Part shown: piece by piece, positions 842 through 58,872 of the stretch
Layout of the letters: every line of letters begins with the position of its first letter
Numbering within the stretch: the stretch's first letter is position 1
Assembly (NCBI RefSeq): GCF_028641065.1
Contig: NC_073400.1
Location: forward strand, 29,512,001 to 29,576,000
Direction of reading: 5' to 3'
DNA length: 64,000 nucleotides
From: Leucoraja erinacea
Taxonomy: Eukaryota
Position numbers and translations under genes: made by a program
The notes under the pieces: model-generated
The model's database searches: none
What the model saw: only the letters and a program-made list of their open reading frames with translations
What the model was told of the DNA's origin: nothing

Positions 842-1162
842 AACCCGTGTCTGCTCCTGTGCTCAGATATCTGTCACCAGCAAATGCCTCACGTCTCGGA
901 GGCTCAGTGTCAGTGTCCTGTGCGTCTGCCAGTGGATCCCTTCCCATCCATTACACATGGTGTGAGAAGAACGAGCATCGGTGGTCAACGATCTTGTCTG
1001 GCAATCAACTGGATCTGAGTTGTGAAATCCTCGCCGGCCAACATCGTCAATATTACTGCACAGCCTCAAATAATCTTGGGACAAAACCGAGTGAAATACT
1101 CAACGTGAAAGTCTTCAAAGGAGAAGGAATGTGCAGTTATGTGACAGAAATGAACAATGCAG
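842..1162 (+). CDS. Gene 1 exon: C2-type Ig domain a
   Basis: cccacag|AACCC acceptor, GCAG|gtgagt donor, phase 1-1; VSVSC...YTW...QYYCTASN. Confidence 0.9.
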
Positions 1163-4100
1163 GTGAGTGTTAACTCATTCACCCTTGGGTGAACCATTCA
1201 CCAGTTTAAGAAGCACTGGCCTAGGCCACAGTTTCGCTGAACACTTGTGCTTGGTCTGTCGTGACCCAGAATCGCGCTTGAAAGACACCCCATTCTCAAC
1301 CTCCCCTGCTGATGCAGAGCAGCAGCAGTTTACACCATCTGCACGATGCACTGCAGCAACTCACCAAGACTCCCTAGACAGCGCCTTCCAATTGCAACAG
1401 GCTCCGTGTTCAATGCATTATTTTTCACCATTCACACCCACATTGGCTGGGAAGCGCTTTTGGAACGACCTGTACAGGTGGTGAGGGATAGTGTACAGTA
1501 TCTGTCTCTCATCGCAATCTAGGTGGAATTCAACACAGCTAAGAAAATGATTGGGCGGAGTCCCTTGTATACTAGAATGTGTATGTTTGTGAAAGGCTAA
1601 TTTTGCTCTTCAATTTATCAAAGATGCTTCCTTTAGTTTCAGGTGCACTATGGGCTGAGAGCGAAGTAAGAGGGGTTCTGGGAAGAGCGATCACAATCGA
1701 TTGTCACTATGCAGCAGTGTACCGCTCACACACAAAATACTGGTGCCGTGGGACAAGTCGCCAGTGTACACATGTGGGTGAAACAAATGGGAAGAGCGGA
1801 AGAGCGTCATTCACAGATAACCCGGCACGAGGAATATTTACTGTGACTGTGGAGGATCTTCACTCTGCTGATACAGGATGGTACAGTTGTGGAATTACTG
1901 CACCTGGCGAACCAACATTTAAAGTATATCTCCAAATATCTGAAGGTAGGTTTCTCAATGAGTGACTTTATGTCTCCACTTTGGCAACTCATAAAACATT
2001 TGTTAGGTGGGAATCTGGTGCACAGTTCTGGTCGCCGCTTTATAAAACAAAAGATGTGGAAGGTTTGGAGAGGTTACAGAAAATGTCACCGGGATATTTA
2101 GTTGTAGTTTACAAATGTAACTTGGAAACGGATCCTTCGACCCACCGAGTCCACACCGACTAGCGATCACCGGTCACACTAGTTCTATGTTATTCCACTT
2201 CCCCATTCGCTCCCTACACACAATTCTACAATACCGTCATTCACACACATCATTAGTTCAACAGTATCACCATCAACAATTTTATACAAGGAAATTTGAA
2301 CTTTGTTGAGAGTGTTACTGTTGCACTAATGAGGTGTTTGAATATTGGTATTGTAGAATTGTGGCAGAGGTTCAGATTACAAATACTGCAAATTCTGGAA
2401 ACATTGAACAAATAGAGATGGTGCTGCTGTGTACTGGTCCAGTGGCTGACATGGTAGTTCTTTCAGAGGGGAGGATGGAGAGCCACAGAGATGTACAAAT
2501 CTGGTAAATGGATTGTGAGGAGAAGGAGCTTTCTGACAGGCAATTAGGCTGTCGCTTTGAAATGTAGCATCTGAGTAGCTGACATTGTCCTCATCTGTAC
2601 TGGAGTGTGTCCATGTTGATTCCCTTCAAAATTGCGCTCCAGCATACACAGTTTGATTTTAATTAGACAAATGGGCAGCATCCTTGTTGTTTTCAATGTC
2701 TAACAGTGTTGCATAAACGATGCTCCCTTTTCCTGCTGGTAATTCCTGAAATGTATAAGAGAATCCAAGATGTGTCTGATGATTTGTCTGATTTGTGTTC
2801 AGTTTTAGTTGGATAGGGTGCAGAATAGATTTACAAGGATGTTGCGATGACTTGAGGGCCCGACTTCGAGGGACGGGTTATAGACAATAGACAATAGACA
2901 ATAGAAAATTGAGCAGACTAGGACATTATTTCTTGGAGCGCAGTAGGAAGAAGGATGATCTTATGGCAGCTACAAAATCATGTGATGAATAGATCGAGTA
3001 AATGCACAGTCTTTTGCCCCGAGTAGGGGAATCGAGAACCAGAGGACATAGTTTTAAGATGAGGGGGGAATGATTTAACAAGAACCTGGGGAGTAACGTT
3101 TTTACACAATGGTTGGTAGGTATATGAAACGAACAGCCGACAGATGTAGTTATGGCAGGTACTATCACAACATTTAAGAATAATTTGGACAGGTACATGA
3201 ATAGTATAAGTTTAGAGGGTTAAGGGCCAAGCAAGGGCAGGTGGTACTAGTGGAGATTGGGCGTGTTGGTCAGTGCGGGCAGGTTTGACTGAAAGGCCTG
3301 TTTCTACGCTGTATGACTCTATGACTCTATGACTAAGTAGATGGGTGTGTCAGATTCCAACCAGGCAGCTCTGGCTAAGATACAGAGATGTTGGATATTG
3401 GCGAGTGTTTGATTTTATGATGTTCACTCAGTGTCTGACTGTTTGCTCCTTTCCCACAGAACCCGTGTCTGTTCCTGTGCTTGGATTTCTGTCACCAGCC
3501 AATGTTTCCTGTCTCGGGGGCTCATTGACAGTGACAGTGTCCTGTGAGTCGCTCCGGGGATCGCTTCCCATTAGCTACATCTGGTATGAAAAGGCCCCAT
3601 CTGGGGATTCAAAGATCTCAGACAACAATGCCCTGGATCTACATTGTCAATCCTTCAAACACCAGCACCATCAATATTTCTGCACAGCCTCAAATCAACA
3701 TGGATCAAAATCCAGTGAAATGGTCAACGTGTCCATCTCCAGCAGTGACGTGCCCTGCAGTTTCCTAATAAAAATCAACAGCACTGGTAAGTAGTGGAGG
3801 GGATGAGGAGAAGAAGGGGAAGTGGGGGCGGGGTGGTTCATAAAATCACGTGATAAAAGCAGTAATAGACCATTCAATCATGACTGATCTATCTTCCCCT
3901 CTTCACCCCATTCTCCTGCCTTCTCCCCAAAGCCCCGACACCCTGAAATCCATGAACTTTATTTAATTAACTTGTCGAGATTAAAATGATGAAATTATGG
4001 CCCATTTGTCAATACTTGGTTGCTGGGCTCCAGAATTAGATTTCCCAGTGCTGGTGTAGGCCAGCTTCCCTGCTAGAACTTCCTCTTATGTTTACACAGC

Positions 4101-6290
4101 TTTAAGCTAGGTATCTGGTGACATCAGTCCAAGCACTTTCACTTTCCGTCATCATCTCCACATGGCCACTCAAATGTGGGACGGGATCAGTAAATCTGGC
4201 CACAATAAAATCCGAGACGACGGTATTAGATTTGGTCCACTGTGTGAATGTTGTGTATTCAGTACCATCGATACTAATCCCATTTACCAGCACCTCGTCC
4301 ATTGTGGCAATGCAGATACCTCCACCTTCTAGGTTTAAAAATATTTATTGATTGCCTTGAAACATCCTGCTCCAAAAATTAACCATATGTTCTCCACTTT
4401 TACACATATGTGCCGTGCACAATTTATCAAAAAAGACCCCATCTATACTGCTCAGAGTTTTGCACATCTGTAATAGGTTTCCCCTTCCTCGCCTATCCTG
4501 CATGGACTTTTATAAAATCCCTATCTGGATTTTGAAGGTGGATAAAATTAAGAAGGAACTGCAGATGCTGGAAAATTCGAAGGAAGCTAATCGACCATGT
4601 CTAAGGAAGGGTCACGACCCGAAACATCACCTATTGCTTCTCTTCATAGATGCTGCCTCACCCGTTGAGTTTCTCCAGCATTTTTGTCCACCTTCGATTT
4701 TTCCAGCACCTCCAGTTCCTTTTTAAAGATATACTAATAGCTGGTGTTTTGATTGGGAATGCTTTAATGGGGGGGAAAGTTGTGCCTTCCTTTCACTGAC
4801 ATTAAATGTTGTGAGAGTATTGATCTGAATTCACAGAGGCACAGCCTGTAGAATCACAGCCTCACAACGCCACGACCCTGGTTCATTGGGTGCTGTCTAC
4901 GTGTGGTCTGCATGTTTTGCCTTAAAATTGTGTTAGTTTCATTTAAGTGCTCCAATTTCCTCCCAGCTCCCTTCCACCATTAGCATTGATCCTTTTTTAC
5001 TATTCCTGACAATCCATGTGGATTTTATTATAATCTTCCTTGCATCTGCATATTCTTTCTTCCAGGGTATTAGACTGTTCTTTGTATCCTTCCACATCCC
5101 CAGTTTCCCTCTCCCGTGACACCCAGTCTGAAGAAGGTGCTCGACCCAAAACCTCACGCATTCCTTCTCTCCAGAGATGCTGCCTCTCTCGCTGTGTTTT
5201 TCCAGCATTTAGTGTCTATCTACTCCGTATTCACTGTATTAACTGCTCCATCTGATGACTTATTTCTCTTTCTCCGAATCCATTTAACGGTGTAATCTCT
5301 CAATCGCAGCCTTGATGCCATGCTCCAGCAATGGTGTAGTAATTGGTGATCACGAGTTGCCCCCCCCACCCCAGTCCAACTCCCGTTCTTTCTCCAACCT
5401 GATCTCCATTGACTCTGCTGCTTCGCCCCGCTCCACTTCACCAAGATTATGAAGCAAATAACAGGTAAATGTTTCAAAGATAAACCGTCTCGTTTCCTCC
5501 CATTGATTCTGTATCTCTTGCCCTTTGCCCAGTTACATCTCATGGGAAGTGGGGCGCTGGATGTTTTTTCTCCTGCTTGTGATCTGGAGTATCTCAACCG
5601 CGGTGTTCACAAGAGACTCTAAGGTAGGTTTTATTGTCATCATGTTCATAAATTATAGGTGCAGTATTAAGCCATTCAGTCCATCATATCTAATCCGCCC
5701 CCAATCACGGCTGATCTATCCTTCCCTCTCGATCCCATTCACATGCCTTCTCCTCATAACCATTGGAATCCATATTTATCAAGAATATGAAAATATCCGC
5801 CTTAAATATATCAATCGATTTGGATGGATGCAAAATTGCTGGAGTAGCTCAGCGGGACAGGCAGCATCTCCGGTGTGAATTGACTTGGCCCCCACAGCCT
5901 CCTGTGGCAATAAATTCCATAGATTCACCACCCTCTGCCCAAAGCAATTACCTCTCTTCACCGAATGTTTCCAAACGGTTTCCAGTAATGCTTTCAAATA
6001 TCCTGTCAATTGATAGAAACAAAAACCGTGCAAGTTTTCATACCCTGAAGTTAAACCAAATCGCTGTGTAGATGATATCACGAGGTTTTGTCAGGTTGTA
6101 CGTGTGCAGGGTGGATTTCTGTGCCCGGTGTGGATTCTGTGGGGTTCATCTTCCAGACATCAATGTGTTGGGAGTGGTCGGGTCAAATAAAGCGCGGTTC
6201 CCACTGTCAGTCAGTCTGATGACCTCACATTGTCTTTTGCAGAGACGCGATGAGCCAGAATCTCGCCATTCGACCCACGAATTACAATGA
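842..6290 (+). CDS. Gene 1 (5'-partial): CD300/pIgR-like (MDIR-like) multi-Ig receptor, activating type; exons C2a, V2, C2b, candidate micro-stalk, charged TM, short tail
   Basis: Exons 842-1162, 1637-1945, 3460-3786, (5446-5464), 5533-5623, 6243-6290 have AG/GT boundaries and compatible phases if the micro-exon is used; paralogous to genes 2-4. Leader and V1 would lie upstream of the window. Confidence 0.8.
1637..1945 (+). CDS. Gene 1 exon: V-type Ig domain 2 (CD300/pIgR-like)
   Basis: ITIDCHY...KYWC-x6-C...DTGWYSCG with the extra C-C' cysteine pair; tandem acceptors at 1637/1643; GAAG|gtaggt donor. Confidence 0.92.
2380..2745 (-). pseudogene. Inverted fossil cytoplasmic (ITIM) exon in the V2-C2b intron of gene 1
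   Basis: Minus strand tacatttcag|GAA...: ELPAGKGSIVYATL...TVYAGA...VSYSDA with two in-frame stops; aligns to the start of the gene 3 terminal exon EMTALEGTDIYANL. 3' boundary approximate. Confidence 0.65.
2808..3335 (+). mobile_element. CR1 LINE 3' fragment (old; shared at ~17941-18255, ~31290-31805, ~50125-50620)
   Basis: Degenerate ...agaaccagaggacatagttttaagatgag... and (ctatga)n tail; boundaries approximate. Confidence 0.7.
3460..3786 (+). CDS. Gene 1 exon: C2-type Ig domain b
   Basis: cccacag|AACCC acceptor, ACTG|gtaagt donor, phase 1-1; VSCES...YIWYEK...QYFCTASN; 6 nt longer than paralogs. Confidence 0.9.
4549..4725. mobile_element. Penelope-derived short inverted-repeat element
   Basis: aaggaactgcagatgctggaaaattcgaagg ... 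ccttcgatttttccagcacctccagttcctt arms. Confidence 0.7.
5446..5464 (+). CDS. Gene 1 candidate 19-nt stalk micro-exon (DYEANNS)
   Basis: pyrimidine-rich ...ccacttcaccaag|ATTATGAAGCAAATAACAG|gtaaat; converts phase 1 to the phase 2 needed by the TM exon; conserved in gene 2; downstream intron is only 68 nt. Confidence 0.5.
5533..5623 (+). CDS. Gene 1 exon: transmembrane segment with charged residues (SYISWEVGRWMFFLLLVIWSISTAVFTRDSK)
   Basis: tttgcccag| acceptor, AAG|gtaggt donor; hydrophobic stretch preceded by E-x-x-R. Confidence 0.85.
6243..6290 (+). CDS. Gene 1 terminal exon: short Tyr-free tail RRDEPESRHSTHELQ*
   Basis: tcttttgcag| acceptor in phase 0 matches the TM donor; conserved in gene 2; AATAAA at 6431 and 6484. 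Confidence 0.75.
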   Translation, partial: RRDEPESRHSTHELQ

Positions 6291-6430
6291 AGACACCTAG
6301 CTTGCACCATCTTAATTTTTGTCACCTGCTACAAGGTTTCTTTCGTCAGCTTCGAACTATTCTTTTAACATTTGCGTGGTTTCTGTTGTTCCTGTCTTAT
6401 ACTATATTAAACGCATACAGCTTGGTGGGG

Positions 6431-7472: not shown

Positions 7473-7483
7473 AGACCAAATTG

Positions 7484-7774: not shown

Positions 7775-7804
<30 letters not shown>

Positions 7805-8732: not shown

Positions 8733-11179
8733 AGGGTAGTGTTAATGTGCGGCGATCGCTGGTCAGTGTAGACTCGATGGGCTGAAGGGCCTGATTTCGC
8801 GCTGTATCTCTAAACTAAACTAAACTAAACTAAACTAGTGGAAAGTCTATTCTTGTGCAGAACAAAATGGTTACGTTGCAGCTTGCAAAGGGCGGGGTGT
8901 GAAACTGCAAATACATTGTGTTGCTTTCCTCAGTCTGACTTGTGACTGTAACCCCGCCCATGAAAGAACTGTGGAGGATGTTGTTTGGAAATAAGAAATG
9001 GCGACCTGCAAAAATGAAGTAAACACCATCAAGTTCGGATAGACTCAAGGATTGCTTTGGGTAAAATGTCCCACTGACATAGATAAATATTCTCCACATA
9101 TTAAGCGGGGTGGGGGAGGGGGGGGGGGGGGCGAGGAGATGAGACCAGAGGCTGCTTTGAACCCACAAACCCCCAGGTCAGGGATATCAGAGAGGTGCTC
9201 AATAGCCAGAGTTACTTGCAGATTCTGTGGTCACACTGATGCTGCCTGGCCCGTTCAAGTGGAGCTTGTTAATGGTCTATTAGGAGGAATGATCTTGAAT
9301 TGGAGATTTTCCCCACTGCAAGACATCCCAAAGTGCCTCACAGATAGTGAGAGATAATCGGTCAGAGATGCCACAGATGGACCCAAAATACTGGAGAAAA
9401 TCAGCGGAATAGGCAGCATCACTGGAGGGAAAGAACGGGTGACATTTCGGATCGATGGCACTGTTGGTTTTAGCGATGGCTGCTGACTTGGAATGTACTT
9501 TAATCTAACAGCAGGACAAATTTTGTTCAAACAGTCATTTATTTCTTTACACTGAATTGTTCTGCAGTGCTGACACTTTGTTCGCGCTGCTGAAACAAGC
9601 GTGTGTAGATTCATATCTCTGAACCGCATCTTGCGAGCAGCTCGCTGTAACACTGTTTGCTGAGCAGTGTTTGCAGAAGTCATGGGTCAATGGCGAATGA
9701 AGACATAATGTAATTGTTTTGCTGCATTGTCGGTTCCTCTCTGCAATGTTTTAGTTGGGCAAGTAAACCGGAAATAGATCCCAACAAAAGATCCTTTACT
9801 GAGGGTCGCCAACGCTCAGCTAACATCAGTTGCGGACACATCAGTGTGTTACACCCATACCACGTGATACACAACGTTGCCATTGATGTACACAACCCGA
9901 ATAAACTGCACTGATCCCCTGTAAAATAACACACCCGGAACGATAGCAGACAGCAGATGTTAGGATATATTATAATGCAACTAGTTACCTACAGAATGAA
10001 ATCGTTGCAATCAGATGTACACAATCAGCCAATAGAATGCACGTGAACATAACTGATAATTTATTAGCTCTGCGTTGCAAAGAAGACAAGTTAACAATTC
10101 TATTCACCGTGCATATTCTACCTTGCTTTAACTTCACTAAGTGTATCACTTTGCCCTTGTTTGAGTTACATTACACATGTCAGTTACATTCCACATCCCG
10201 CTTTCCCAGCTGATTTCCATCCTGTGATAATTCTAGACAAAATTCTTCACAGACCACTACACCATTAATTGTCATTTACAAAACATGAATATCATGACAA
10301 TAGTGTTTCAAAGTTGGAAATAAATAGTTGATGTAGAGTGAAGAGCCTCAAACTCCAATTAACCTCAGCTGATTTCGGGTCAAAAGCCCCTACTTCCTAA
10401 CGCCAGCTTCCTGTTTTGCCTCTTGTCACCGGCAATATGCCAAAACAAAAGTTCCAATGATTATATTTTTGATCTGCCGATCCACTTACAAAATCATCAA
10501 GAGGGAATGATCCGGAAGTGTACACATCTTAGAAGTATCTACTCTTCTAAATGTCGTATTTTAACCAACGTATCATTGTTTACACGAAGGGTCCCGACCC
10601 GAAACGTCACCTATCAATTTTCTCCAGGGGTACTGCCTGGCCCGCAGAGTTGCTCCTATCACTATTCAGCGTTCACAGATTCTGAGTACAGAGATAACCG
10701 CCGCTCCATCCTTATGGATACATCACACTTGACGAAGGCTGAAGTAGGCCAATTTCTAGTCAACGTGTATGGGGCATTGCTTTAAGGTCATGGATGGGGA
10801 AGTTTGGGGCATGTTTAGTAACATTGGACAAATTGACCCTTTGATGAGCATATTGGTTTAACGAGCTGGGGAGAAGGGCCTGTTTCACGCGTAGACTCGT
10901 GGGATCATCCAGACCCACACCAACTTTGCTATTTTTATAATCCTTGATGAGCCTGTTCAGAACTTACTGACAGTTGCGTAAATAGCACTGCTCGGCGTGA
11001 AAGCCGCGTTGACCTGTGTCTCAACGAGCTCAGACAGTTCTCTGTTCATAAGCCCTGTACTCCTAAAGCCAGCTTGCTGTTTGTTGGTGAAGCTATCACA
11101 GCGATGCAGTATACACTTCGAATGATTATATCGAGAGTCTGTCGATCCACTTAGAAAATCTGACAGACAATGATCCGGA

Positions 11180-11220
11180 CTTGTCACCTGTGGATAAAAC
11201 TACAAATGTGAATTCCCATT
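11180..11220 (+). pseudogene. Gene 2 degraded leader-exon remnant
   Basis: cttgtcacctgtggataaaactacaaatgtgaattcccatt resembles cttgtcactatggataaaacaatgtggattcccatt of genes 3/4, with indels. Confidence 0.55.
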
Positions 11221-12984
11221 ACTTAAGTAACGTAATCTGCGTACTCAAGGGTCCGTGGGGACATTGAACCTTCTCTTTTAAGTGAGGTACGTGGCTGCCT
11301 GGCCACATGTTGTCCTATGATATGCGCGCTTCAAAGATTCAATGTGTACAGAGAGTTGGCGGAGGCTCCTTAGGACATACAGGGACGCTGAAGCAGCAGA
11401 GCAATGTGTTGGGGTGTGGATAAGTCCATGTGTTGGAATTGGGATTCTCTCCGATATTTGACCACTTGTGATGTGCATGACTGGTTGAACTGCACCGAGT
11501 TGTGGATTTAGGAGATTGATCCACTGCCGTATGACTGTGTTCATCTGACCGGCATATTTGCTACAAGGCATAACTCTAGGCGCCGTTCCCACTGTGCGTG
11601 ACAAGAAATGGCTCCTGTGAGGGGAAGATCGAACTTCAGATCATACTCCTTGCTATTGGAGGATCGCCCCTGTCATTGAGATCTTGACTTGCTCCGCGAC
11701 AGACAAGCAGTGAAAGGCCTTGTCACAACAGCGACAGGACATTTGATTCGTCCTCTTCTTCAACCATGTGACGGTTCCGGGATCAGTGGAAAGCAGATGT
11801 TGTTTTCATAACTGTGCAATGTAGTAATTGACGGTAACACGTAACCCTTGGGTGTTTAGTAGAGTGATGGACTCATTTGGTGTAGAGCATGTTAGTTCGA
11901 ATTGTGACCAATCATTCTGACCAGTTCGGAAGTTCACAACTGAATATCAACTTCTGTCCCGGTATTGATCCCAAGCACAAACTAAGTCACCCTGGCTGGA
12001 GTTAGATACTCCAAGAACCTGGAGTCGAAAACAGGTCACTCGCACCTGACATCGAGTTGACCCAGGCACTACTCCAACATGTTTCTCCCAACGTCGGTGC
12101 ACGGTCACCGATGGCTCATTAGTCGTCTCTCGTCCTGCATTTGCAACTCGACAGTCCGGTGCTGTAAAATCCAAAGGTCCCTAAAGCGTCGCAAACAGAT
12201 CTACGGGTCATTAATGGAAAACCAACGGCCCTAGACTCTGCCGTCATGGCCCAGACGTGACCCCGGCAGGCGAGTTCCCGACATTGGATAGAACATAGTT
12301 TACCCCCGGATGTTGCAAATTCAGTTTTAGTTTATTGTCACGTGTGACCGAAGTAGAGTGTTTTAGTTGCGAGCTCCTCCGTCAGCAGAAAAGACAATCC
12401 TGAAAGGATGTGTGATTATTCCGATCATCTTACAGTGCATGTATACACATGAAAAGGAAAATAACGTTTAGTGTAAGGTAAAGGCCAGCACATAGTCCGA
12501 TCAAGGGTAGTCCGAGGGCTCATCAGAGAGAGGGTAGATGGGAGTTCATGCACCGCTCTCTGTTTGTGGTAGGATGATATGAGATGCCATCATAACAGCT
12601 GGATGATGAAACTGTCCTGAACTCTGGCGGTGTGCGTGTTTCACGCTAGTAACGCTCTCCAGTAAGGGACCCGCTTTATTGATTAACCCGTCCGTCCTCT
12701 GTCCTCAGTCAGGGGGCGTTGTGTAAAGGCACAGTGAATGTCTAAACACGGGTCCGGCCCACTGTCGCGTTGAGAGATGAATGTTGGCAGCGCAGCCGGG
12801 TTTCTGGCATCCGCCAATGAAATAGCAATAGTGGGGTCTTTCTGTGGGGTGAGAGGCCGGGCATACGCCTGGGATTGTTGAAAGGCAGCTCCTGGCAACA
12901 ACTGCCGCGCTCCCTCAGTACCGCACTGCGATCCCAGCCCCTATTTCTGTTCAGGGATCTGGAGGTGGGTATGAACCTGAATTG

Positions 12985-19995: not shown

Positions 19996-20044
19996 GTCAT
20001 GAATATTCTTGTGCAAATTTGATAACATCCAATTACTCTGCAAG
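19996..20044 (+). CDS. Gene 2 49-nt stalk exon (GHEYSCANLITSNYSA)
   Basis: ttccaacag| acceptor, AAG|gtaaac donor, phase 1-2; paralog of 33634-33682 and 52299-52347. Confidence 0.75.
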
Positions 20045-42348: not shown

Positions 42349-42397
42349 ATGGATAAAACAATGTGGATTCCCATTCTTCTCATCTCCTCGCTGCCCG
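42349..42397 (+). CDS. Gene 4 leader exon
   Basis: MDKTMWIPILLISSLP, gtgagt donor. Confidence 0.88.
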
Positions 42398-48300: not shown

Positions 48301-51300
48301 CAGTTTACACCATCTGCACGATGCACTGCAGCAACTCACCAAGACTCCCTAGACAGCGCCTTCCAATTGCAACAGGCTCCTTATTCAATGCATCATTCTT
48401 CACCATTCACACCACATTGGCTGGGAAGCGCTTTGGAACGACCTGTGCAGGTGGTGAGGGACAGTGTACAGTATCTGTCTCTCATCGCAATCTAGGTGGA
48501 ATTCAACACAGTTAAGAAAATGATTGGGCGGATTCCCCTGTACACATTGACGCATACTATAATGTGTATGTCTGTGAAAGGCTAATTATGCTCTTCAATT
48601 TATGAAATATGTTTCCTTCAGTTTCAGGTGCACTGTGGGCTGAGAGCGAAGTAAGAGGGGTTGTGGGAAGAGCGATCACAATCGATTGTCACTATGCAGC
48701 AGTGTACCGCTCACACACAAAATACTGGTGCCCTGGGACAAGTCGCCAGTGTACACATGTAGGTGAAACAAATGGGAAACATGGACAGAGCGGAAGAGTG
48801 TCAATCACAGATAACCCGGCACGAGGAATATTTACTGTGACTGTGGAGGATCTTCACTCTGGAGATACAGGATGGTACAGATGTGGAATTACTGCATCTG
48901 GCGAACCAACATTTAAAGTACATCTCCAAGTATCTGAAGGTAGGTTTCTCAATGAGGGACTTTATGTCTCCACTTTGGCAACGGACAAAACATTTGTTAG
49001 GTGGGAGTCTGGTGCACAGTTCTGGTCCCCGCTTTATAAAACAAAAGATGTGGAAGGCTTGGAGAGGTTACAGAAAATGTCACCGGGATATTTAGTTGTA
49101 GTTTACAAATGCAACATGGAAACGGATCCTTCGGCCCACCGAGTCCTCACTGACTAGCGATCACCGGTCACACTAGTACTATGTTGTTCCACTTTCCCAT
49201 TCGCTCCCTACACACAATGCTACAATACCGCCATTCACACACCTCATTAGTGCAACAGTATCACCATCAACAATTTTATACAAGGAAATTTAAAAGTTGT
49301 TGATAGTGATACTGTTGCACTAATGAAGTGTTTGAATATTGGTATTGTAGAATTGTGGCAGAGTTTCAGATTAAAAGATTAACTATAGATTGTAGGAATT
49401 GTAAAACAAAGAGAGATGGTGCTGCTGTGTACTGGTCCAGTGGCAGACATGGTAGTTCTGGCAGCTGGGAGAATGGAGAGAGACAGAGATGTATAAATCT
49501 GGTAAATGGATTGTGAGTCGATGGATCTTTCTGAAGGACAATTTGGCTGTTGCTTTGAAATGTAGTATCTGAGTAGCTGACATTGTCCTCATCTGTGCTG
49601 GAATGTGTCCCTGTCGATTTCCTATGAAATTGCATTTCTGCAACAGTTTGATTTTGATTCGACATATGGGCAGCTTCCTTGTTGCTTTGAATAGCCAACA
49701 CTGTTGCATAAACGATGCTACCTTTTCATCGTTATCCATATGCAAGGATATGGGGGAAGTTTTTTAGGACCGAGATGAGAAAAACATTTTTCACACAGAG
49801 AGTGGTGAATCTCTGGAACTCTCTGCCACAGAAAGTAGTTGAGGCCAGTTCATTGGCTCTATTTAAGAGGGAGTTAGATGTGGCCCTTGTGGCTATATGT
49901 ATCAGGGGGTATGGAGAGAAGGCAGGTACAGGATACTGAGTTGGATATTCAGCCATGATCATATTGAATGGCGGTGCAGGCTCGAGGGTCTGAATGTCCT
50001 ACTCCTGCACCTATTTTCTATGTTATATGTTTTCCTGCTGGTAATTCCTGAAATGTAAAAGAGAATCTAAGATTGTCCGATGATTTGTCTGATTTGTGGT
50101 CAGTTTAAACCACCATGTTATCGGAAAGATGCTGACAAGTTGGATAGGGTGCAGAGAAGACTTAGAATGACTTGAGGACCCGACCCAGAGGGAGGAGTTG
50201 AGCAGTCTAGCACTTTACTTTTTGGAGCGCAGGAGGATGAGGGATGATCTTCAGGCAGGTAAAAAAAAAACCATGCAACGAATAGTTCGAGTAAATGCAC
50301 AGAGTCTGTTGCCCAGAGTAGGGGAATCGAGAACCAGAGGACATAGTTTTAAGATGAGGAGAATGATTTAACAAGAATCTGGGGAGTAACGTTTTTACAC
50401 AAGGTTGGTAGGTATATGAAACGAACTGCTGACGGAAGCAGTTATTGCAGGTACTATCATAACATTCAAGAAAAATTTGAACAGGTACATGAATAGGATT
50501 AGTTTGGAGGGTTAAGGGCCAAGCATGGGCCGGTGGAACTAGTGTAGATTGGGCGTGTTGGTCAGTGCGGGCAAGTTAGACAGAAGGAACTGTTTCTACG
50601 CTGCATGACTATGGTTATATGTAGATGGATGGGTCAGATTCCAAACTGGCGGCTCTGGCTATGATACAGAGATGTTGGATATTGGCGAGTGTTTCATTTT
50701 CAGATGTTGACTCAGTGTCTGACTGTTTGCTCCTTTCCCACAGAACCCGTGTCTGTTCCTGTGCTTGGATTTCTATCACCAGCCAATGTCTCCTGTCTCG
50801 GGGGCTCAGTGACAGTGTCCTGTGAGTCGTTCCGGGGATCCCTTCCCATTAACTACACCTGGTATGAAAAGACCCCATCTGTGGATTCAAAGATCTCAGA
50901 CAACAATGCCCTGGATCTACATTGTCAATCCTTCAAACACCAGCACCATCAATATTATTGCACAGCCTCAAATAAACGTGGATCAAAATCCAGTGAAATG
51001 GTCAACGTGTCCATCTCAAGCAGTGACGTGCCCTGCAGTTTCCCAGTGAAAATCAACGGCACTGGTAAGTAGTGGAGGGAATGGGGAGAAGAAGGGGGAG
51101 TGGGGGTGCGGTGGTTCATAAAATCACGTGATAAAAGCAGTAATAGACCATTCAATCATGGCTGATCTATCTTCCCCTCTTCACCCCATTCTCCTGCCTT
51201 CTCCATATAACCCCTGACACCCTGAAATCCATGCACGTTATTTAATTTTTATCAAGATTAATATGATGGAATTATGGCCCATTTGTCAATACTTGGTTGC

Positions 51301-54300
51301 TGGGCTCCAGAAATAGATTTCCCAGTGCTGGTGTAGGCCAGCTTCCCGGCTAGAACTTCCTCTTACGTTTACACAGCTGTAAACTAGGTCTGCAGTGACA
51401 TCAGTCCAAGCACTTTCACTTTCCATCATCTCCACATGACCAACACTCAAATATGGGAAGGGAACAGAAATTATCAGTAAATGTGACCACAGTTAACTTC
51501 TAGACTATCAGATTTGGTCCACTGTGTTACCATTAAGTGCCATCGATACTTATCCCATTTTTACCAGCTCCTCATCCATAGTCTTCTCAGACTTGGCAAT
51601 GCAAGTGCCTTCACCATCTGGGTTTAAAAATATTTCTTGCTCAGACACCCTCCAAATATTCTACTCCTAAACTCAACGCTATGTTCTCCACGTCTATGCA
51701 CATCTGCTGTGCTGATTTCCCACGAAGTACCTTATCTATGTCCCTCATAGGGACATTACAGGCACACCTGTATTAGCTTCCTGGTTCCTCTCCTGTGTGG
51801 AATAAAACCCCAGCTATCCAGCCAGTTTAGTTTAAAGATCCAGCATGGAAGCAGCTGCCTTTCACCGGTACACCCATTCTACAATTAGGGACAATTCTAA
51901 ATTAAGGGACAATTTACAGAAGCCAATTAACCTACAAACCTGCACGTCTTTAGTTTAGAGGTACAGTGTGTAAACAAGCCCTTCAGCCCACCGGGTCTGG
52001 GCCGACCAGCGATCCCCGCACATTATTAACCATCCTACACCCACTAGGGATATTAACCAAAGGCAATTAACCTACAAACCTGTACGTCTTTGGGGTGTGG
52101 GAGGAAACCGAAGATCTCGGAGAGAACCCACGCAGGTCACGGGGAGAACGTACAAACTCCATACAGGCAGCACCCGTGGTCGGGATCATTGCCCTGTCTA
52201 CTAAGCCTATAAACTCCTTACATCGGACAAGCATGCTCTCTTGTTCAGCTGCAAGTGAAAAGCAGTGAAACTGATTTTTTATTTCCTTGTTCCAACAGGA
52301 CTTGAATATTCTTGTGAAACTTCAAAAAGATCCAAGTATACTTCAAGGTAAACTGTTTAAGAATTAACTGCAGATGGTGGAAAATCGAAGGTAGACAAAA
52401 GTGCTGTAGAAACTCAGCGGGTGCAGCAGCATCTATGGAGCGAAGGACATAGACAACGTTTCGGGCCGAAACCCTTCTTCAGACTGATTGATGGTCTGAT
52501 GAACGGCTTCGGCCCGAAACGTTGCCTATTTCTTTCGCTCCATAGATGCTGCTGCACCCGCTGAGTTTCTCCAGCACTTTTGTCTACCTTCAAGGTTAAC
52601 TACTCTGTTTCCAATGAAAGGCGCCATGTACTAATTGCTGGTGTTTTGATTGGGATTACTTCAATTGGGAGAAGTTTGTGTCTTCCGTTCACTGACATTC
52701 AAGGCCGGTTGGAGTATTGATCTGTACACACAGTGACACAGCCAGTGGAACCACAGCCTCACAAAGCCAAGACCCTGAACTTAGGTGCCGTCTATGTGTG
52801 TTCTGCATATTTTGCTTTCATTGTGTTCGAAGGAACTGCAGATGCTGGTTTAAACTGAATATAGCTACAAACAACTGGAGTAACTCATCGGGTCAGACAG
52901 CGTCTCTGGAGAAATGGAATAGGTGACGTTTCGGGTTGAGACCCTTCTTCAGATTGAGAGTCAGGGGAAAGGGAAACGAGAGCGATATCGACGGTGATAT
53001 AGAAAGATATAAAACAATGAATGAAAGATATGCAAAAAAGTAACGATGATCAAGGAAACGATCCATAGGTAGCTGTGGGTTAGGTGAAAACGAGTTATAC
53101 AGACAACGAGACACTACAAGACAACAGTGACATTCATACCACAACTAGAGTGGGGGAAGGACGAAGAGAGAGGAGATGCAAGGGTAATTTAAAGTTAGAG
53201 AAATCAACATTTATACTGCTTGGCAGTAAGCTGCCCAAGAGAAGTATGAGGTGCTGGTCCTCCAATTTGCATATGGCCTCACTCTGGCAATGGAGGAAGC
53301 CCAGGACAGAACAGTCAGTGTGGGAATGGGCGGGGGAGTTAAAGTGTTTAGCAACTGGGAGATCATATAGTGCCAGGAGGACTGAGCATAAGTGTTCAGT
53401 GAAGCGATCGCCCAGTCAACGTTTAGTCCTGCTGATGTATAAGAGTCCACACCTCATACAGTAGATGAGGTTGGATGAGGTTCAAATGAACTCTATCCTG
53501 AAAGGACAGTTGAGGTCCTTGGACAGAGTCGAGGGAGGAGGTACAGGGACAGGTGTTGCGTTTCCTGTGGTTGAAAGGGAAGGTATTGGGGAGAGCTATT
53601 GGATGGGAAAGGATGAGATAACCAGAGAGGTATAGGGGACCTCAAACATACGTGATAGTGAAAGGCTTGTATAGAGTGGATGTGGGGAGGATGTTTCCAC
53701 CAGTGGGAGATTCAAGGACTAGAGGTCACAGCCTCAGAATGAGATGTTCTTTTAGGAAGAAGATGAGGAGAAAATCCTTTAGTCTGAGGGTGGTGAATCT
53801 GTGGAATTCTTTGCCTCAGAATTCTGTGGAGGCTAATCAGTGGATATTTTTAAGGCAGAGATAGCTAGATTCTTCATTAGTACGGGTGTTAGAGGTTATG
53901 GGGAGAAGGCAGGACAATGGAGTTTGGAGGGAGAGATAGATCAGTCATGATTGAATGGCGGAGTAGATGTGATGGGCCAAATTCCCTAATTCTTCTCATA
54001 TTGCTTATGACCTTATTCTATCATAATATGTATATGCCTTGCAAACCAGATATTAGTTAACTCACCAATAGTGAAATTGCGCTGGTTTGCATCTCATTGT
54101 GTTGTGTATACGCTTGGGTGATGAGAACACTTCCTCCATTTGTGGTACTCCCTGCGGTATTCACCATGACTTCTCCATCACTAACCTCACCCCACGGTGT
54201 GAGATGAGTATAGTTGCCAAACCCAAGTATTGTTGCTTTGCCTTGCTGTGACCTGCTCTGGCGTGGTACTGATAGGAAAATGCATAGTGAATTATGGGCT

Positions 54301-57300
54301 AAAACACCACCTTTGATATCACGTATGGCAACACCTTCCAGAGTTGGTCAAAGTCTCAATGTCAGTCACTCCAACAGCAGGAAGTGTCTCCACCTAGAAC
54401 GTGACCCTGGGTGGTAGGCATGTTAGATCACACTGCTGACCTTGAGATGGTCATGGTGAGCCGTCTTCTAGATATGTTGAAGATGTTTCATATTCCAGAC
54501 GGCTCTTAGCGAACAGTCACTGTCCAAACCCAATGTTGGTGGAGGTGAAGATGGAGTTGTAAATGGCATTGTGGTGAGATTTGTTGTGAACCAAGTGCAT
54601 TGTTTTCTCTTTGGCCTGGTGTTCTCTCCACCGAGGTTGGACCAGGGTTGTAGAACCGTATTCACACAGTGGTGATTTCAATGATAGCTGCAAATATTTG
54701 GTTAATACACTGCAGTATTGTGGGGGGGGGGGGCAGCATGCTGGCAGTCAGATATGAAAACTCCAAAAACAGTGGCATGGAGGCACAGCGGTAGAGTTTC
54801 TGCCTTATTGCCCCAGAGACGTGTTCGATCCCGACAACTGATGCTGCCTGTACGGAGTTTGGTCGTTCTTCCAGTGACCACAGGGGTTTTCTCCAGTTTT
54901 CTCTGGGTGTTCCAGTTTTCTCCCACATTCCAAAGACGTGCAGGTTTGTAGGTTAATTGGCTTCAGTAAATTGTCTCCGATGTTTAGGACGGATCTAGTG
55001 TATGGGGATTGCTGACCGATGCAGACTTGGTGGGCCGAAAGGCCTGTTTCCATGCTGTATCTCTAAACTCAACTAATCTAATCGAAACTCAACTCAACTA
55101 ATCATTGCAATAAAAGTGTAACAGTTCCCATACATTGTTTGTCAAGGAGGAGGGAGGGTTCCTTAATGGTTGGACCCAATTGCTCTTCAACCAGTTTCAC
55201 GATCGTTTGTCAGTGTCACCTTACTGTGAGCAGATTAGCTGCTGCATTACCCACCAAAACAAACTCTACACCTCATTTCCTTTGCTGCACACTTCAAAAA
55301 AATCATGAAAGGTGCCATATAAATGTTTGACTTTTGTTCTTTACTGAAGTCCAAGAATCAATGATGAGCCATGTCTCACCCTTCCCTATTCTCTGTCCAA
55401 CAGGATCATTTACATAGTTGCGTCTGGTGTCACTGTGCTTCTCCTGATTCTCATCATTGCCTTCTTTTGGTACCGAAAGCGTAAAACCAAGGGTGAGTTT
55501 CTGATTTCACTTAAATAATTTCACAATACATGTCTGAGTTCCTTGCAGAATGTCAAGAGATTTAATTATGTTCTAATCAACAAATACCCTGCATTAAAGT
55601 AATAAAATGTAGGGAGAAGCATGGATGATCAATAATGCTATCATGTTTGATGCTTTCATGGTGACTCAGTGAAAAACTGTTCTTTGAACATCATTTTACA
55701 GAAACTGTCTGAGTGTGAAATGGCAGAGATGTGTGAGAACTAAGAGGCCAGGTAGAAGTAAGATTTACATAGATACTCTCATCCTCTCAGCTGTTAGAAT
55801 ATGCTTTGTGTGATTAGCTGTTGTATTTCGATTCAGGTGAAGTCGTGTTTATTGTCACATGCACAAGCACGTTGAAGTACAGTTACAATGAAGATCACGC
55901 CTGCAGCCTCACATGGACATCGACAACGTACAACATACCTGCATCACACAGAGGGTGGTGGGTATATGGCAGGAGCTGCCAGAGGAGGTAGTTGAGGCAG
56001 AGCTGGTCTAGCTAGGACAGGTAATCCAAGATGTGAACGCCCATAAACTTGAAGCTGCCAACTATCTTCACCACCGATGATGGTAGATGGATGGGCCAAT
56101 TAGCATAATTCTGCTCCTATCACTTACTGAACTTATGAAAACCTGTTTTAGCAAATAAGGTTAGGACAATAGACACAAAATGCTGGAGTAACTGAGTGGA
56201 ACGTGCAGCATCTCTGGAGAGAAGGAATGTGTGACATTTCGGGTCAAGACCCCTTTTCAGACTGATGTCAGGGGAGTTGGTAGTACAGAGATAAAATGTA
56301 GTCGGAGACAGTAAGACTAGTCAAAGAACTGGGAATGGGGAGGGGATGGAGAGAGAGGGAAAAACAAGGGTTACTTGAAGTTAGAGAAGTCAATGTTCAT
56401 ACCGCTGGGGTGTAAGCTGCCCAAGCAAAATATGAGGTGCTGTTCCTCCAATTTGTGCTGGGTTTCACTCTGACAATGGAGGAGGCCCAGGACAGAAAGG
56501 TTAGTGTGGGAATGGGGGGAGGAGTTAAAGTGTTGAGCAACCGGGAGATCGGGTAGGTTTAGGCATCTGTTAGGAGGGATGGGTAGAGCACAGGGTATAT
56601 GATACAGCAACCAGAACAACAGGGCTGATTCTTATTCCGTACGTGCAGTACTTTTGACCTGAATATAAGGTCTTGCACACAACACGTAGATGTTTCTGTG
56701 TGTTGGAGGGAACTACAGATGCTGGTTTACAATGAAGATAAACACAAAATGCTCATGCAATTCAGCGGGTCAGGGTACGTCTATGCAGAAGAGGAACAGG
56801 TGACGTTTCGAGTCGAGACCCTTCTTCAGACTGAGAGTCAGGGGAAAGGGAAACAAGAGATCTCGAAGATACATAGAACAAATGAATGGAATATATGAAT
56901 GAATTATGTTTAAACCTGTTCCTGATATGGCTCTATCGACAACATATTTTCCAGAATCCAAGCGCAATACATCACACGGTGAAGACAACAATGAAACCCA
57001 GGTAAAAATGTGAAATATAAATTCTCTGAGTGATGAAGAATATATAGCATTGAATTATCAGTGTTTACACAGGTCGTTTAGCAACACCAGTTCAGTCCAG
57101 TTAAGAGATCCAGCGCAGAAACAGGCCCTTTGGCCCACAGAGTCTAGGCCGACCAGCGAACCCTGCACATGTACAGTATCCTACACACACTAGGGGCAAT
57201 TTGCAATTAAGCCAAACCAATTAACCTACAAGAAACTCAGCGGGTGCAGCAGCATCTATGGAGCGAAGGAAATAGGCAACGTTTCGGGCCGAAACCCTTC

Positions 57301-58872
57301 TTCAGACTGATCGGGGGTGGGGGTAGGTCGGGACAAGAAAGGGAAAAGGAGGAGTAGCCAGAAGGCTGGAGGGTGGGAGGAGATAGTAGGGGAGCTGAGG
57401 AAGGGGAGGAGACAGCAAGGACTAACAGAATTGGAAGAATTCGATGTTCATGCCCCGGGGGTGTAGACTCCCCAAACGGAATATGAGGTGCTGTTCCTCC
57501 AATTTCCGGTGCTGCTCGCTGTGGCCATGGAGGAGACCCAGGACAGAGAGGTCGGAGGCGGAGTGGGAGGGGGAGTTGAAGTGCTGAGCCACCGGGAGGT
57601 CAGCTTGGTTATTGCGGACCGAGCGGAGGTGTTCGGCGAAACGATCGCCCAACCTCCGCTTGGTCTCACCGATATAGATCTGCTGGCATCTAGAGCAGCG
57701 GACGCAATAGATGAGGTTGGAAGAGATGCAGGTAAACCTCTGTCGCACCTGGAACGACTGCTTGGGTCCTTGAACGGAGTCGAGGGGGGAGGCAAAGGGA
57801 CAAGTGTTGCATCTCCTGCGGCCGCAAGGGAAAGTGCCCGGGGAGAGGGTGGACCGAGAGGGAAGGGAAGAATTGACAAGGGAGTTATGGAGGGAGCGGT
57901 CTTTGCGGAAGGCAGATATGGGGGGAGGTTGGGCGATCGTTTCGCCGAACACCTCCGCTCGGTCCGCAATAACCAAGCTGACCTCCCGGTGGCTCAGCAC
58001 TTCAACTCCCCCTCCCACTCCGCCTCCGACCTCTCTGTCCTGGGTCTCCTCCATGGCCACAGCGAGCAGCACCAGAAATTGGAGGAACAGCACCTCATAT
58101 TCCGTTTGGGGAGTCTACACCCCCGGGGCATGAACATCGAATTCTCCCAATTCTGTTAGTCCTTGCTGTCTCCTCCCCTTCCTCAGCTCCCCTACTATCT
58201 CCTCCCACCCTCCAGCCTTCTGGCTACTCCTCCTTTTCCCTTTCTTGTCCCGACCCACCCCCACCCCCGATCAGTCTGAAGAAGGGTTTCGGCCCGAAAC
58301 GTTGCCTATTTCCTTCGCTCCATAGATGCTGCTGCACCCGCTGAGTTTCTCCAGCTTTTCTGTGTAACCTTCGATTCTCCAGCATCTGCAGTTCCCTCTT
58401 AAACAATTAACCTACAAGCCTGTTGTAGGCGCTGTCAGGCAGCAACTCTACTGCTGCTCCACCGTACTGCACTATCTTTGTGTTGTAAACAGCAGCAATG
58501 GCTTGTTCTGTACACTGAACAGTTTGAGACCTACTTTGTAATAGACCTCTGTTGAGGACCTTTCAAATCTATTAGGTTGTAAAATTGGATTGTGTTACAT
58601 TTTAGGAAATGGCAGTGTTGAAAGAGGACCACGTTGATGCAAATCTGGAAAACAACAGGGCAGGTGACCATTTGGATAACAATGAAGGTGGAATCACGTA
58701 TGCAGTGGTGAAATTTCAAAAGAAGACAAGACCAAGGCAGCATGTGGCTGAAAACGCTGTCGTCTACGCAGATGTCAAGTTTCATCGCAACTGCCCAAAG
58801 GGCATTCGGAAACCCCAATCTCCTGGGACTCCAGAGAACCCTGAGTCAACCTATGCCTCTGTCGTTTCTTAG
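42349..58872 (+). CDS. Gene 4: complete CD300/pIgR-like (MDIR-like) inhibitory receptor, 593 aa
   Basis: join(42349-42397,43469-43789,47075-47395,48622-48939,50744-51064,52299-52347,55404-55492,56955-57001,58606-58872) = 1782 nt; all GT-AG, same phases as gene 3. Confidence 0.9.
43469..43789 (+). CDS. Gene 4 V1 exon
   Basis: ITIDCHY...KYWCDWRRSPC...DAGWYRCG. Confidence 0.93.
44917..45557 (-). mobile_element. Rex1/Babar-type LINE 3' fragment
   Basis: Minus ORF ITVWFGNSSAWDRKALQRAVRSAER...HPNNGLFQLLRSGKR...SFFSQAIRIL; (ttgac)n tail. Confidence 0.85.
45817..46031 (-). mobile_element. CR1 LINE 3' fragment
   Basis: catagaaacatagaaattaggtgc..., reverse complement of the 3' end of the 14881-17633 family. 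Confidence 0.85.
47075..47395 (+). CDS. Gene 4 C2a exon
   Basis: 321-nt phase 1-1 Ig exon. Confidence 0.9.
47967..48193. mobile_element. hAT-type MITE
   Basis: TIRs cagtgcatcttaaact / agtttaagaagcactg; 8-bp TSD gcc(a/t)aggc; internal ttcattcaccct repeats. Confidence 0.75.
48622..48939 (+). CDS. Gene 4 V2 exon
   Basis: 318 nt; retains the HGQ segment missing from V2 of genes 1 and 3. Confidence 0.92.
49366..50047 (-). pseudogene. Inverted fossil ITIM exon, gene 4 copy, split by a CR1 fragment
   Basis: Acceptor at 50047 (ELPAGK), CR1 3' piece ~49727-50030, then an open frame GSIVYATV...VSYSDT to 49366. Confidence 0.6.
49727..50030 (+). mobile_element. CR1 LINE 3' fragment inserted in the fossil exon
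   Basis: FFTQRVVNLWNSLPQKVVEASSLALFKRELDVAL; flanked by a ttttc duplication; absent in genes 1 and 3. Confidence 0.85.
50744..51064 (+). CDS. Gene 4 C2b exon
   Basis: 321-nt phase 1-1 Ig exon. Confidence 0.9.
52299..52347 (+). CDS. Gene 4 stalk exon GLEYSCETSKRSKYTSR
   Basis: 49 nt, phase 1-2. Confidence 0.82.
52355..52591. mobile_element. Non-autonomous Penelope-derived fold-back element
   Basis: ~98-nt inverted arms 52387-52484 / 52494-52591; flanked by repeated cttcaaggt(a/t)aact; absent after the gene 3 stalk exon. Confidence 0.8.
52825..53620 (-). mobile_element. Degenerate Penelope-like fragment
   Basis: Reverse-complement similarity to the GIY-YIG C-terminus and pseudo-LTR; boundaries approximate. 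Confidence 0.7.
53625..54020 (+). mobile_element. CR1 LINE 3' fragment
   Basis: MFPPVGDSRTRGHSLRM...RVVNLWNSLPQ. Confidence 0.75.
55404..55492 (+). CDS. Gene 4 neutral TM exon
   Basis: Identical to 34806-34894 by manual comparison. Confidence 0.92.
56165..56570 (-). mobile_element. Penelope-like fragment
   Basis: Minus ORF LPVAQHFNSSPHSHTNLSVLGLLHCQSETQHKLEEQHLIFCLGSLHPSGMNIDFSNFK. Confidence 0.8.
56955..57001 (+). CDS. Gene 4 cytoplasmic exon 1 ESKRNTSHGEDNNETQ
   Basis: 47 nt, phase 1-0, paralog of 35434-35480. Confidence 0.82.
57231..58403 (-). mobile_element. Young 5'-truncated Penelope-like element with GIY-YIG endonuclease segment and inverted pseudo-LTR
   Basis: CGRRRCNTCP...SSNLIYCVRCSRCQQIYIGETKRRLGDRFAEH...; 427-bp inverted arms 57231-57657 / 57924-58350; 15-bp flanking direct repeat caattaacctacaag; absent in the gene 3 intron. 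Confidence 0.93.
58606..58872 (+). CDS. Gene 4 terminal exon with ITIMs (ITYAVV, VVYADV, STYASV)
   Basis: ttttag|GAA acceptor; three ITIM-consensus motifs; first Tyr motif replaced by VDANL. Confidence 0.92.
   Translation, partial: EMAVLKEDHVDANLENNRAGDHLDNNEGGITYAVVKFQKKTRPRQHVAENAVVYADVKFHRNCPKGIRKPQSPGTPENPESTYASVVS

Follow-up and report, generated by a model that had tools for sequence, protein, structure and literature searches.

Skates' modular domain immune-type receptors, or MDIRs, are said to carry one to six immunoglobulin (Ig) domains from four subfamilies, with similarity to CMRF-35 (CD300), pIgR, TREM, NKp44 and FcR homologs; MDIR1 is reportedly activating, MDIR2 and MDIR3 are reportedly inhibitory, and MDIR4 and MDIR5 are said to lack recognised motifs. 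Here we analysed a 64,000-nucleotide stretch of the genome of the little skate, Leucoraja erinacea (contig NC_073400.1, positions 29,512,001 to 29,576,000; the window), in which an earlier reading of the letters alone, the original prediction, had seen four tandem receptor genes forming a paired activating and inhibitory cluster. We consider it probable that the window is part of the little skate MDIR cluster and holds two intact inhibitory units (genes 3 and 4) and two damaged units (genes 1 and 2) with an arginine in the transmembrane (TM) segment, here called Arg-type. The original prediction was largely right in what it observed; its interpretation is right at the level of the family and wrong for the window, where both Arg-type units are defective.

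Within the MDIR family, published by Cannon et al. (2006, Immunogenetics 58:362, as given in PMC3031540), the closest named proteins in our protein comparison are clearnose-skate MDIR3 (P0166) and MDIR5 (P0186), which upholds the proposed link to skate MDIRs; MDIR2 (P0255) was also among the relatives retrieved. Each Ig exon of the window finds its best match in the MDIR3 or MDIR5 domain of the same position, at 70-87% identity. MDIR3 (Rostroraja eglanteria, 701 aa) has an identical signal peptide, MDKTMWIPILLISSLP, V, C2a, Vb and C2b domain types at 70-83% identity, an LEYSC stalk, a neutral TM at 85% identity, a small cytoplasmic exon and a tail with three immunoreceptor tyrosine-based inhibitory motifs (ITIMs) that is 70-78% identical to the tails of genes 3 and 4 (78% for gene 3). 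It differs in belonging to another species and in having five Ig domains (V-V-C2-V-C2), whereas genes 3 and 4 have four. MDIR5 (clearnose skate, 501 aa) has the V-C2-V-C2 layout, a GHEYSC stalk, the tail KRDESEPRHSAHELQ and a TM, YISWKVGRWLLFLLLVIWSISTAVFTRGSK, with 87% identity to the window exons at 5533-5623 and 21433-21523. Unlike the Arg-type units of the window it is an in-frame complementary DNA (cDNA), whereas gene 1 is without the stalk exon and gene 2 without the 5′ half, and it carries K three residues before the arginine where the window genes have E. The layout and both 3′ cassettes are therefore not new, because the MDIR3 and MDIR5 cDNAs of 2006 have them and the loci exist as RefSeq models: MDIR5 already combines V-C2-V-C2 with this TM and tail, and the ITIM tail is that of MDIR3, so that the suggested novelty of the layout and of its pairing does not hold. 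The joining of charged-TM exons to V-C2-V-C2 exons, on which the original prediction depended, is shown for the family by the MDIR5 cDNA, in which the charged TM is in frame with the ectodomain.

The wider comparison covered about 250 elasmobranch proteins, retrieved by a HMMER search with the gene 1 C2b exon, by cluster look-ups and by two word-index searches; exons were searched singly, and full-length comparisons were made with database proteins and not with joined coding sequences. The domain layouts of these relatives are V-C2, V-C2-C2, V-V-C2, V-C2-V-C2 and six-domain forms. The window genes display the features of the MDIRs, namely modular Ig subtypes, a signal peptide, the (L/P/H)EYSC stalk motif, ITIMs and similarity to CD300, pIgR, TREM, NKp44 and FcR homologs. 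Their Ig exons are open, in phase 1 and bounded by AG/GT splice sites; the V exons match Pfam V-set (E 3e-15 to 3e-11) and the C2 exons match Ig_2, Ig_3 or ig. When a V exon was compared with the PDB, the best single-domain match was CD300LF (1e-16, 64 bits), and every pIgR domain, then NKp44 (5e-07) and TREM2 (1e-05), matched as well, while a C2 exon matched six FCRL5 domains (8e-47), including the PVSxPVL...GSLPIxY signature. From these two sets of matches it follows that the receptors alternate CD300/pIgR-type V domains with FCRL-type C2 domains. Such an ectodomain sets them apart from the CD300 family proper, whose members have a single V domain, against four alternating V and FCRL-like C2 domains here. 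All domains of pIgR align with the V exons, as does CD300LF, but pIgR has V-type domains only, no V/C2 alternation and a long sorting tail, whereas the window genes have C2 exons between their V exons and tails of the ITIM type or of 20 residues; the RefSeq name "pIgR-like" is only an automatic label. The domains of FCRL5 align with the C2 exons, but that protein is C2-type only and likewise shows no V/C2 alternation.

Self-comparison of the window resolved four tandem duplication units, all on the + strand. The Ig-exon regions of units 1, 3 and 4 share 89-95% DNA identity (95% over 2.3 kb between units 1 and 3, 1-2341 against 28683-31019), and the 3′ cassettes cannot be aligned; according to the self-comparison and a four-gene alignment, the point at which cassettes were swapped lies just downstream of the shared stalk exon. 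Three L. erinacea RefSeq proteins match the window exon by exon at 100% identity. P0169 (593 aa, "pIgR-like isoform X2") is gene 3 from the leader through the last exon, P0153 (803 aa, isoform X1) consists of the leader, Va, C2a and Vb of gene 3 followed by gene 4 from its C2a exon onward, and P0002 (XP_055511094, 884 aa) includes the gene 1 exons. Open frames, splice sites and these matches confirm that the exons proposed between 842 and 58872 are real and correctly placed, and the predicted 593-aa protein is, for gene 3, identical to P0169 over its 593 aa (100%). Of the four similar Ig paralogs that had been proposed, genes 1, 3 and 4 stand, at the DNA identity just given, but gene 2 cannot be counted as a V-C2-V-C2 paralog.

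Genes 3 and 4 are intact: V-C2-V-C2 is followed in each by a stalk, by a neutral TM of sequence IIYIVASGVTVLLLILIIAFFWY and by the three ITIMs ITYAVV, VVYADV and S(I/T)YASV. The neutral TM and the three ITIMs are as the original prediction had described them, with the motifs located by their consensus and gene 3 corresponding to P0169. Their exons, all on the + strand, are as follows.

25524 to 25572, + strand: gene 3 leader exon, MDKTMWIPILLISSLP (100% to P0169 and to MDIR3 residues 1-16)
26902 to 27222, + strand: gene 3 Va exon (Pfam V-set 3.2e-15; 100% to P0169)
29521 to 29841, + strand: gene 3 C2a exon (splice sites, Pfam, P0169)
30315 to 30623, + strand: gene 3 Vb exon (splice sites, Pfam, PDB match, P0169)
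31928 to 32248, + strand: gene 3 C2b exon (splice sites, Pfam, PDB match, P0169)
33634 to 33682, + strand: gene 3 49-nt stalk exon, GPEYSCETSKGSEDSS (P0169 sequence; DNA alignment)
34806 to 34894, + strand: gene 3 neutral TM exon, RIIYIVASGVTVLLLILIIAFFWYRKRKTK (P0169)
35434 to 35480, + strand: gene 3 cytoplasmic exon, ESKCNTSRGEDNNETQ (P0169)
35892 to 36167, + strand: gene 3 last exon (100% to P0169; 78% to the MDIR3 tail)
35988 to 36005 (ITYAVV), 36054 to 36071 (VVYADV) and 36141 to 36158 (SIYASV), + strand: gene 3 ITIMs (motif scan)
42349 to 42397, + strand: gene 4 leader exon (protein comparison, translation)
43469 to 43789, + strand: gene 4 Va exon (open; used by none of the RefSeq models retrieved)
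47075 to 47395, + strand: gene 4 C2a exon (splice sites; P0153 match)
48622 to 48939, + strand: gene 4 Vb exon (splice sites; P0153 match)
50744 to 51064, + strand: gene 4 C2b exon (splice sites; 100% to P0153)
52299 to 52347, + strand: gene 4 49-nt stalk exon, GLEYSCETSKRSKYTS (P0153; SINE-like insertion directly after it)
55404 to 55492, + strand: gene 4 neutral TM exon (P0153)
56955 to 57001, + strand: gene 4 cytoplasmic exon (P0153)
58606 to 58872, + strand: gene 4 last exon (100% to P0153)
58693 to 58710, 58759 to 58776 and 58846 to 58863, + strand: gene 4 ITIMs (motif scan)

In the RefSeq model P0153 the donor of gene 3 Vb (30623) is joined over 16 kb to the acceptor of gene 4 C2a (47075), and the gene 3 exons from C2b onward are left out together with the leader and Va of gene 4; the model may reflect splicing between genes that yields a six-domain receptor, or may be an artefact. 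Two candidate exons were discarded. A hydrophobic stretch, LIAGVLIV..., which all four genes have just downstream of the stalk position, was rejected as a TM exon, as stops or frameshifts interrupt it in genes 1 and 2 and neither P0169 nor P0153 contains it, and a second EYSC-like stretch (34087 in gene 3, 54203 in gene 4) was rejected as a second stalk exon, being unused by the models and showing weak DNA similarity.

The defect of gene 1 lies at the stalk. Between the C2b exons, which end in phase 1, and the TM exons of either kind, which begin in phase 2, the 49-nt stalk exon, (G)(L/P/H)EYSC..., forms the bridge; it is present in genes 2, 3 and 4, in the MDIR5 cDNA and in Rhinoraja models. 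This exon was not found in the gene 1 intron at 3787-5532 by blastn (word size 7) with the stalks of genes 2, 3 and 4 and their flanks as queries, of which only the downstream flank matched, and no EYSC-like peptide occurs in any frame of that intron. Because the 49-nt exon is missing between a phase 1 C2b and a phase 2 TM, the charged TM of gene 1 is out of frame. We read the frame by script across this junction, and across the C2b/stalk/TM junctions of gene 2: joined straight to the TM exon, gene 1 C2b reads VTSHGKWGAGCFFSCL, with a stop after 16 codons. P0002 ends in exactly VTSHGKWGAGCFFSCL and a stop, its residues 869-884 being the TM exon in the shifted frame at 100% identity. Gene 1 begins upstream of the window, so its leader and first V fall outside; the features inside are these.

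842 to 1162, + strand: gene 1 C2a exon, FCRL-like C2, phase 1-1 (splice sites; 100% to P0002 residues 550-656)
1637 to 1945, + strand: gene 1 Vb exon, CD300/pIgR-like V (Pfam V-set 1.8e-12; splice sites; P0002)
3460 to 3786, + strand: gene 1 C2b exon, whose donor leaves one base, phase 1 (Pfam; P0002 residues 760-868)
4548 to 4700, no strand assigned: SINE-like repeat at the expected stalk site of gene 1 (four-gene alignment; repeat-level read depth, with read ends at 4548-4571)
5533 to 5623, + strand: gene 1 Arg-type TM exon, xYISWEVGRWMFFLLLVIWSISTAVFTRDSK, whose acceptor needs two preceding bases, phase 2 (87% to the MDIR5 TM)
6243 to 6290, + strand: gene 1 tail exon, RRDEPESRHSTHELQ and a stop (translation; compare the MDIR5 tail, KRDESEPRHSAHELQ)
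6406, 6431 and 6484: AATAAA/ATTAAA polyadenylation-signal matches after the gene 1 tail exon

RNA from three runs was examined over 842-6400, where the depth on gene 1 exons is only 0.4-2.7, the unique intron bins are empty and repeats dominate; at the identity cut-off of 95% the reads could stem from paralogs, and the depth is too thin to show splicing. No gene 1 splice joint reached the listing threshold at this depth in these three thin runs. A contig run, X1, covers the gene 1 introns too and in this respect resembles DNA.

The same shifted reading of the TM exon closes two further models, P0206 (L. erinacea) and P0034 (Amblyraja radiata). In the three proteins, P0002 included, from two skate species, this +1-frame end is VTSHGKWGAGC(F/S)FSCL followed by a stop, and corresponds to 5533-5580 and 21433-21480 in the window. 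Soluble MDIRs that lack a TM may be generated repeatedly in this way, when the stalk exon is either lost or skipped. A short interspersed nuclear element-like (SINE-like) insertion lies at 52348-52590, directly after the stalk donor of gene 4, and the same element is found in gene 1 at 4548-4700; at the gene 4 insertion 14 bp overlap (33676-33689 in gene 3), so that the donor site is present twice. This element may have played a part in the loss of the stalk exon of gene 1.

In gene 2 the damage lies in the 5′ half. The leader is a relic, the V exon gives no Pfam match, C2a and Vb were not found by tblastn between 13760 and 18378, and the C2b, stalk, TM and tail exons, mutually in frame, are the sole open part.

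11177 to 11224, + strand: dead leader relic of gene 2, ATG lost, with an indel and stops (81% by blastn to the gene 3 leader)
13496 to 13760, + strand: pseudo-V exon of gene 2, in which indels are numerous and every frame has stops (aligned to Va of genes 3 and 4)
14924 to 17223, + strand: long interspersed nuclear element (LINE; APE endonuclease and reverse transcriptase) inserted in gene 2 (Pfam Exo_endo_phos, RVT_1)
18378 to 18698, + strand: gene 2 C2b exon, open (splice sites, Pfam)
19996 to 20044, + strand: gene 2 49-nt stalk exon, GHEYSCANLITSNYSA, phase 1 to 2 (alignment; compare the MDIR5 stalk, GHEYSCENPITSSYSAS)
21433 to 21523, + strand: gene 2 Arg-type TM exon, in frame with gene 2 C2b and stalk (frame reading)
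21927 to 21974, + strand: gene 2 tail exon, RRDEPESRHSTHKLQ and a stop (translation)

The Arg-type cassette of genes 1 and 2 consists of a 91-nt TM exon that encodes xYISWEVGRW(M/V)FFLLLVIWSISTAVFTRDSK and a tail exon of 15 residues, RRDEPESRHSTH(E/K)LQ and a stop, both with good splice sites and followed by polyadenylation signals. Together the two exons give a tail of 20 residues that is free of Tyr, in agreement with the roughly 20 residues originally proposed. The cassette occurs 47 times in predicted proteins of skates, rays, sawfish and sharks. Among the 41 distinct sequences several positions, counted from the arginine, are nearly fixed: W at −4 (37/41), V at −2 (38/41), L at +7 (40/41), I at +9 (39/41), S at +13 (37/41), T at +18 (36/41) and R at +19 (37/41). 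The arginine is flanked by W-x-V-(G/I) before it and LLF after it; our search pattern fixed the Arg-Trp pair and one Phe, and the invariance of those residues is uninformative. Mean pairwise identity of the TM is 0.64 for the Arg-type against 0.36 for ITIM-type relatives, the former value being inflated by roughly 0.15 by the search pattern. The E-x-x-R motif that had been proposed for this TM did not survive the comparison: the residue at −3 is E in the window genes and K, D, N, S, T or Q among the 41 relatives, and the conserved feature is therefore the arginine in its context, not E-x-x-R. A regular expression for a hydrophobic window around E..R, moreover, missed the exon.

The Arg-type TM is conserved in its sequence and not merely in its hydrophobicity, which points to a partner within the membrane, and this conservation is our main argument for reading the cassette as adaptor-coupling and so as activating. 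Its partner would most likely be a signalling adaptor, similar in kind to FcR-gamma or DAP12, whose TM contains an acidic residue. An arginine in the first TM turn is the arrangement of receptors coupled to FcR-gamma, such as Fc-alpha-RI, the LILRA receptors, NKp46 and OSCAR; the likeness of the skate cassette to them is a resemblance and not a test.

The original prediction had seen in the window the paired-receptor logic of KIR, LILR and CD300. This logic does hold at the level of the family, because near-identical ectodomain exons carry one of two unrelated cassettes, the ITIM tail or the short tail preceded by a TM with an arginine. The window itself contains inhibitory members with ITIMs and closely related ectodomains, genes 3 and 4, but no intact activating gene, as the junction of gene 1 is frameshifted and gene 2 has no working leader, V, C2a or Vb. 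KIR, LILR, CD300 and PIR resemble the skate genes in setting near-identical ectodomains on an ITIM tail or on a short-tailed TM that contains a basic residue, and also in their tandem clusters, birth-and-death turnover and raised membrane-distal ratio of non-synonymous to synonymous change (dN/dS; 1.84 for Va, from few sites). They differ in that CD300 has a single V and KIR and LILR only C2/I-type domains, and coupling to an adaptor is, in the skate, a proposal drawn from sequence.

We propose that the locus arose from one duplication unit, copied four times, with a promoter, leader, V, C2, V, C2, 49-nt stalk exon and 3′ signalling cassette. Units 3 and 4 would be inhibitory genes of the MDIR3 type, and their ITIMs, once phosphorylated, should by analogy with ITIM receptors recruit SHP-type phosphatases. 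Units 1 and 2 carry the MDIR5-type cassette, with its arginine in the first TM turn (W-x-V-G-R-W-LLF...) as the putative docking site of an adaptor. The product of unit 1 would be a TM-less, probably secreted four-Ig protein, or the product of a pseudogene; unit 2 has lost its leader, V, C2a and Vb and kept C2b, stalk, TM and tail only. Damaged Arg-type units would represent the birth-and-death turnover expected of a paired receptor family.

It seems quite improbable to us that genes 1 and 2 are, after all, working activating partners of genes 3 and 4, with gene 1 rescued by a cryptic micro-exon (19 nt was proposed) and gene 2 serving as a short C2-only receptor. Their TM and tail exons are open, with good splice sites and polyadenylation signals after them, in gene 2 the C2b, stalk, TM and tail exons share one frame, and short modular relatives exist, for example Rhinoraja P0012 (264 aa), with a leader, partial V, C2b, stalk and Arg-type TM; but neither the MDIR5 cDNA nor the retrieved models contain a micro-exon, their order being always C2b, 49-nt stalk and TM, the RefSeq model of gene 1 is frameshifted, and the window offers gene 2 neither a usable start codon nor a signal peptide. 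The low stranded read depth on the exons and tail of gene 1 in three RNA runs, with empty unique intron bins, would suit a working gene 1, yet reads at an identity of at least 95% could derive from paralogs. Equally doubtful is a single composite transcription unit, in which transcripts from the gene 1 promoter would have the donor of gene 1 Vb or C2b joined to the acceptor of gene 2 C2b at 18378, both in phase 1, and would continue through the gene 2 stalk, TM and tail, giving an in-frame, membrane-bound activating receptor, while gene 1's own TM and tail exons would supply an alternative frameshifted soluble form. The splice phases are compatible, the defects are complementary (gene 1 is without the stalk exon only, gene 2 without the 5′ exons only), the 3′ exons of gene 2 are still open, and P0153 offers a precedent in its joint between the gene 3 Vb donor at 30623 and the gene 4 C2a acceptor at 47075, although that precedent may be a prediction artefact. 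None of the retrieved protein models, on the other hand, contains gene 2 C2b at 100% identity, polyadenylation signals follow the gene 1 tail exon, and this joint is absent from the RNA data, whose depth was too low to show any.

A different view of the Arg-type cassette would make it a plain membrane anchor with a non-signalling short tail, and MDIR5-type proteins decoys or adhesion molecules. The arginine does sit at the N-terminal edge of the hydrophobic run and the residue three before it is variable, but for an anchor hydrophobicity would suffice, yet specific residues are kept across elasmobranchs (W −4, V −2, L +7, I +9, S +13, TR +18/+19), and the TM identity of 0.64 against 0.36 for the ITIM type points to a specific membrane partner; we regard a plain anchor as unlikely. 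Of a bolder kind is the suggestion that the MDIR5-type cassette may be an ancient, elasmobranch-wide adaptor-coupling module overlooked by the original description, that stalk loss or skipping may be a recurrent route to soluble decoys, or that genes 1 and 2 may form one composite unit, which we offer as speculation with some small chance of being right. The reading that we favour, an MDIR cluster with two intact inhibitory and two damaged Arg-type units, has several points weighing against it. The RefSeq models are themselves predictions; the open 3′ exons of gene 2 (dN/dS of C2b 0.55-0.88) could mean continued use; and the RNA shows no splice junctions, so that gene 1 could regain its frame through a cryptic exon or by splicing into gene 2. 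As for the activating role of the cassette, the arginine lies at the very edge of the hydrophobic segment, the pairing with an adaptor is deduced from conservation and from resemblance to NxxR-type receptors, and MDIR5 reportedly has no activating or inhibitory motifs.

The ectodomains of the units share a recent ancestry, with genes 1 and 3 at 95% identity and a rate of synonymous change (dS) of about 0.05-0.14 (about 0.05-0.12 among genes 1, 3 and 4). The dN/dS of Va is 1.84 (40 non-synonymous against 7 synonymous changes), and by exon the values are 0.8-2.2 for C2a, 0.45-0.69 for Vb and 0.36-0.88 for C2b; the counts are small and we claim no significance for them, but the pattern fits a diversification of the membrane-distal domains. 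The intron between Vb and C2b holds an antisense fossil of a different ITIM-type tail exon (2509-2763, 31007-31246 and 49507-49725, all on the − strand); it shares 60-68% identity with the Rhinoraja P0004 tail and is interrupted by stops or by a gap. As the fossil is common to genes 1, 3 and 4, its insertion is older than the duplication of the units.

Other repeats were found in and around gene 4. Its last intron contains an inverted repeat of 427 bp with 99.3% identity (57231-57657 and 57924-58350), each arm of which has an open reading frame (ORF) of 223 aa with a weak match to a GIY-YIG endonuclease (E 0.0014); the repeat resembles an inverted pair of insertions of a Penelope-like retroelement, and related fragments lie at 28008-28268, 53179-53417 and 56343-56619. 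Downstream of gene 4, in retroelement-like sequence, an ORF of 223 aa (60971-61642, + strand) matches Pfam ALKBH8_N (E 9e-16), and similar ORF sequence is found at 45023-45487 (− strand). Rather than a gene, it is probably the conserved C-terminal region of an ORF from a retrotransposon.

The window reveals no new kind of receptor and no new principle, and its genes are largely ordinary members of a known family. What it provides is the exon-level genomic layout of part of an MDIR cluster, in a family so far known mainly from cDNAs; the arrangement of exons in the cluster, the point of cassette exchange and the view that the MDIR5-type TM is an adaptor module based on its arginine may be unpublished. 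These results should be of use for annotation and for the study of paired-receptor evolution in cartilaginous fish, in which activating-type and inhibitory-type 3′ cassettes have been swapped behind a common ectodomain and stalk, the Arg-type copies here being in decay.

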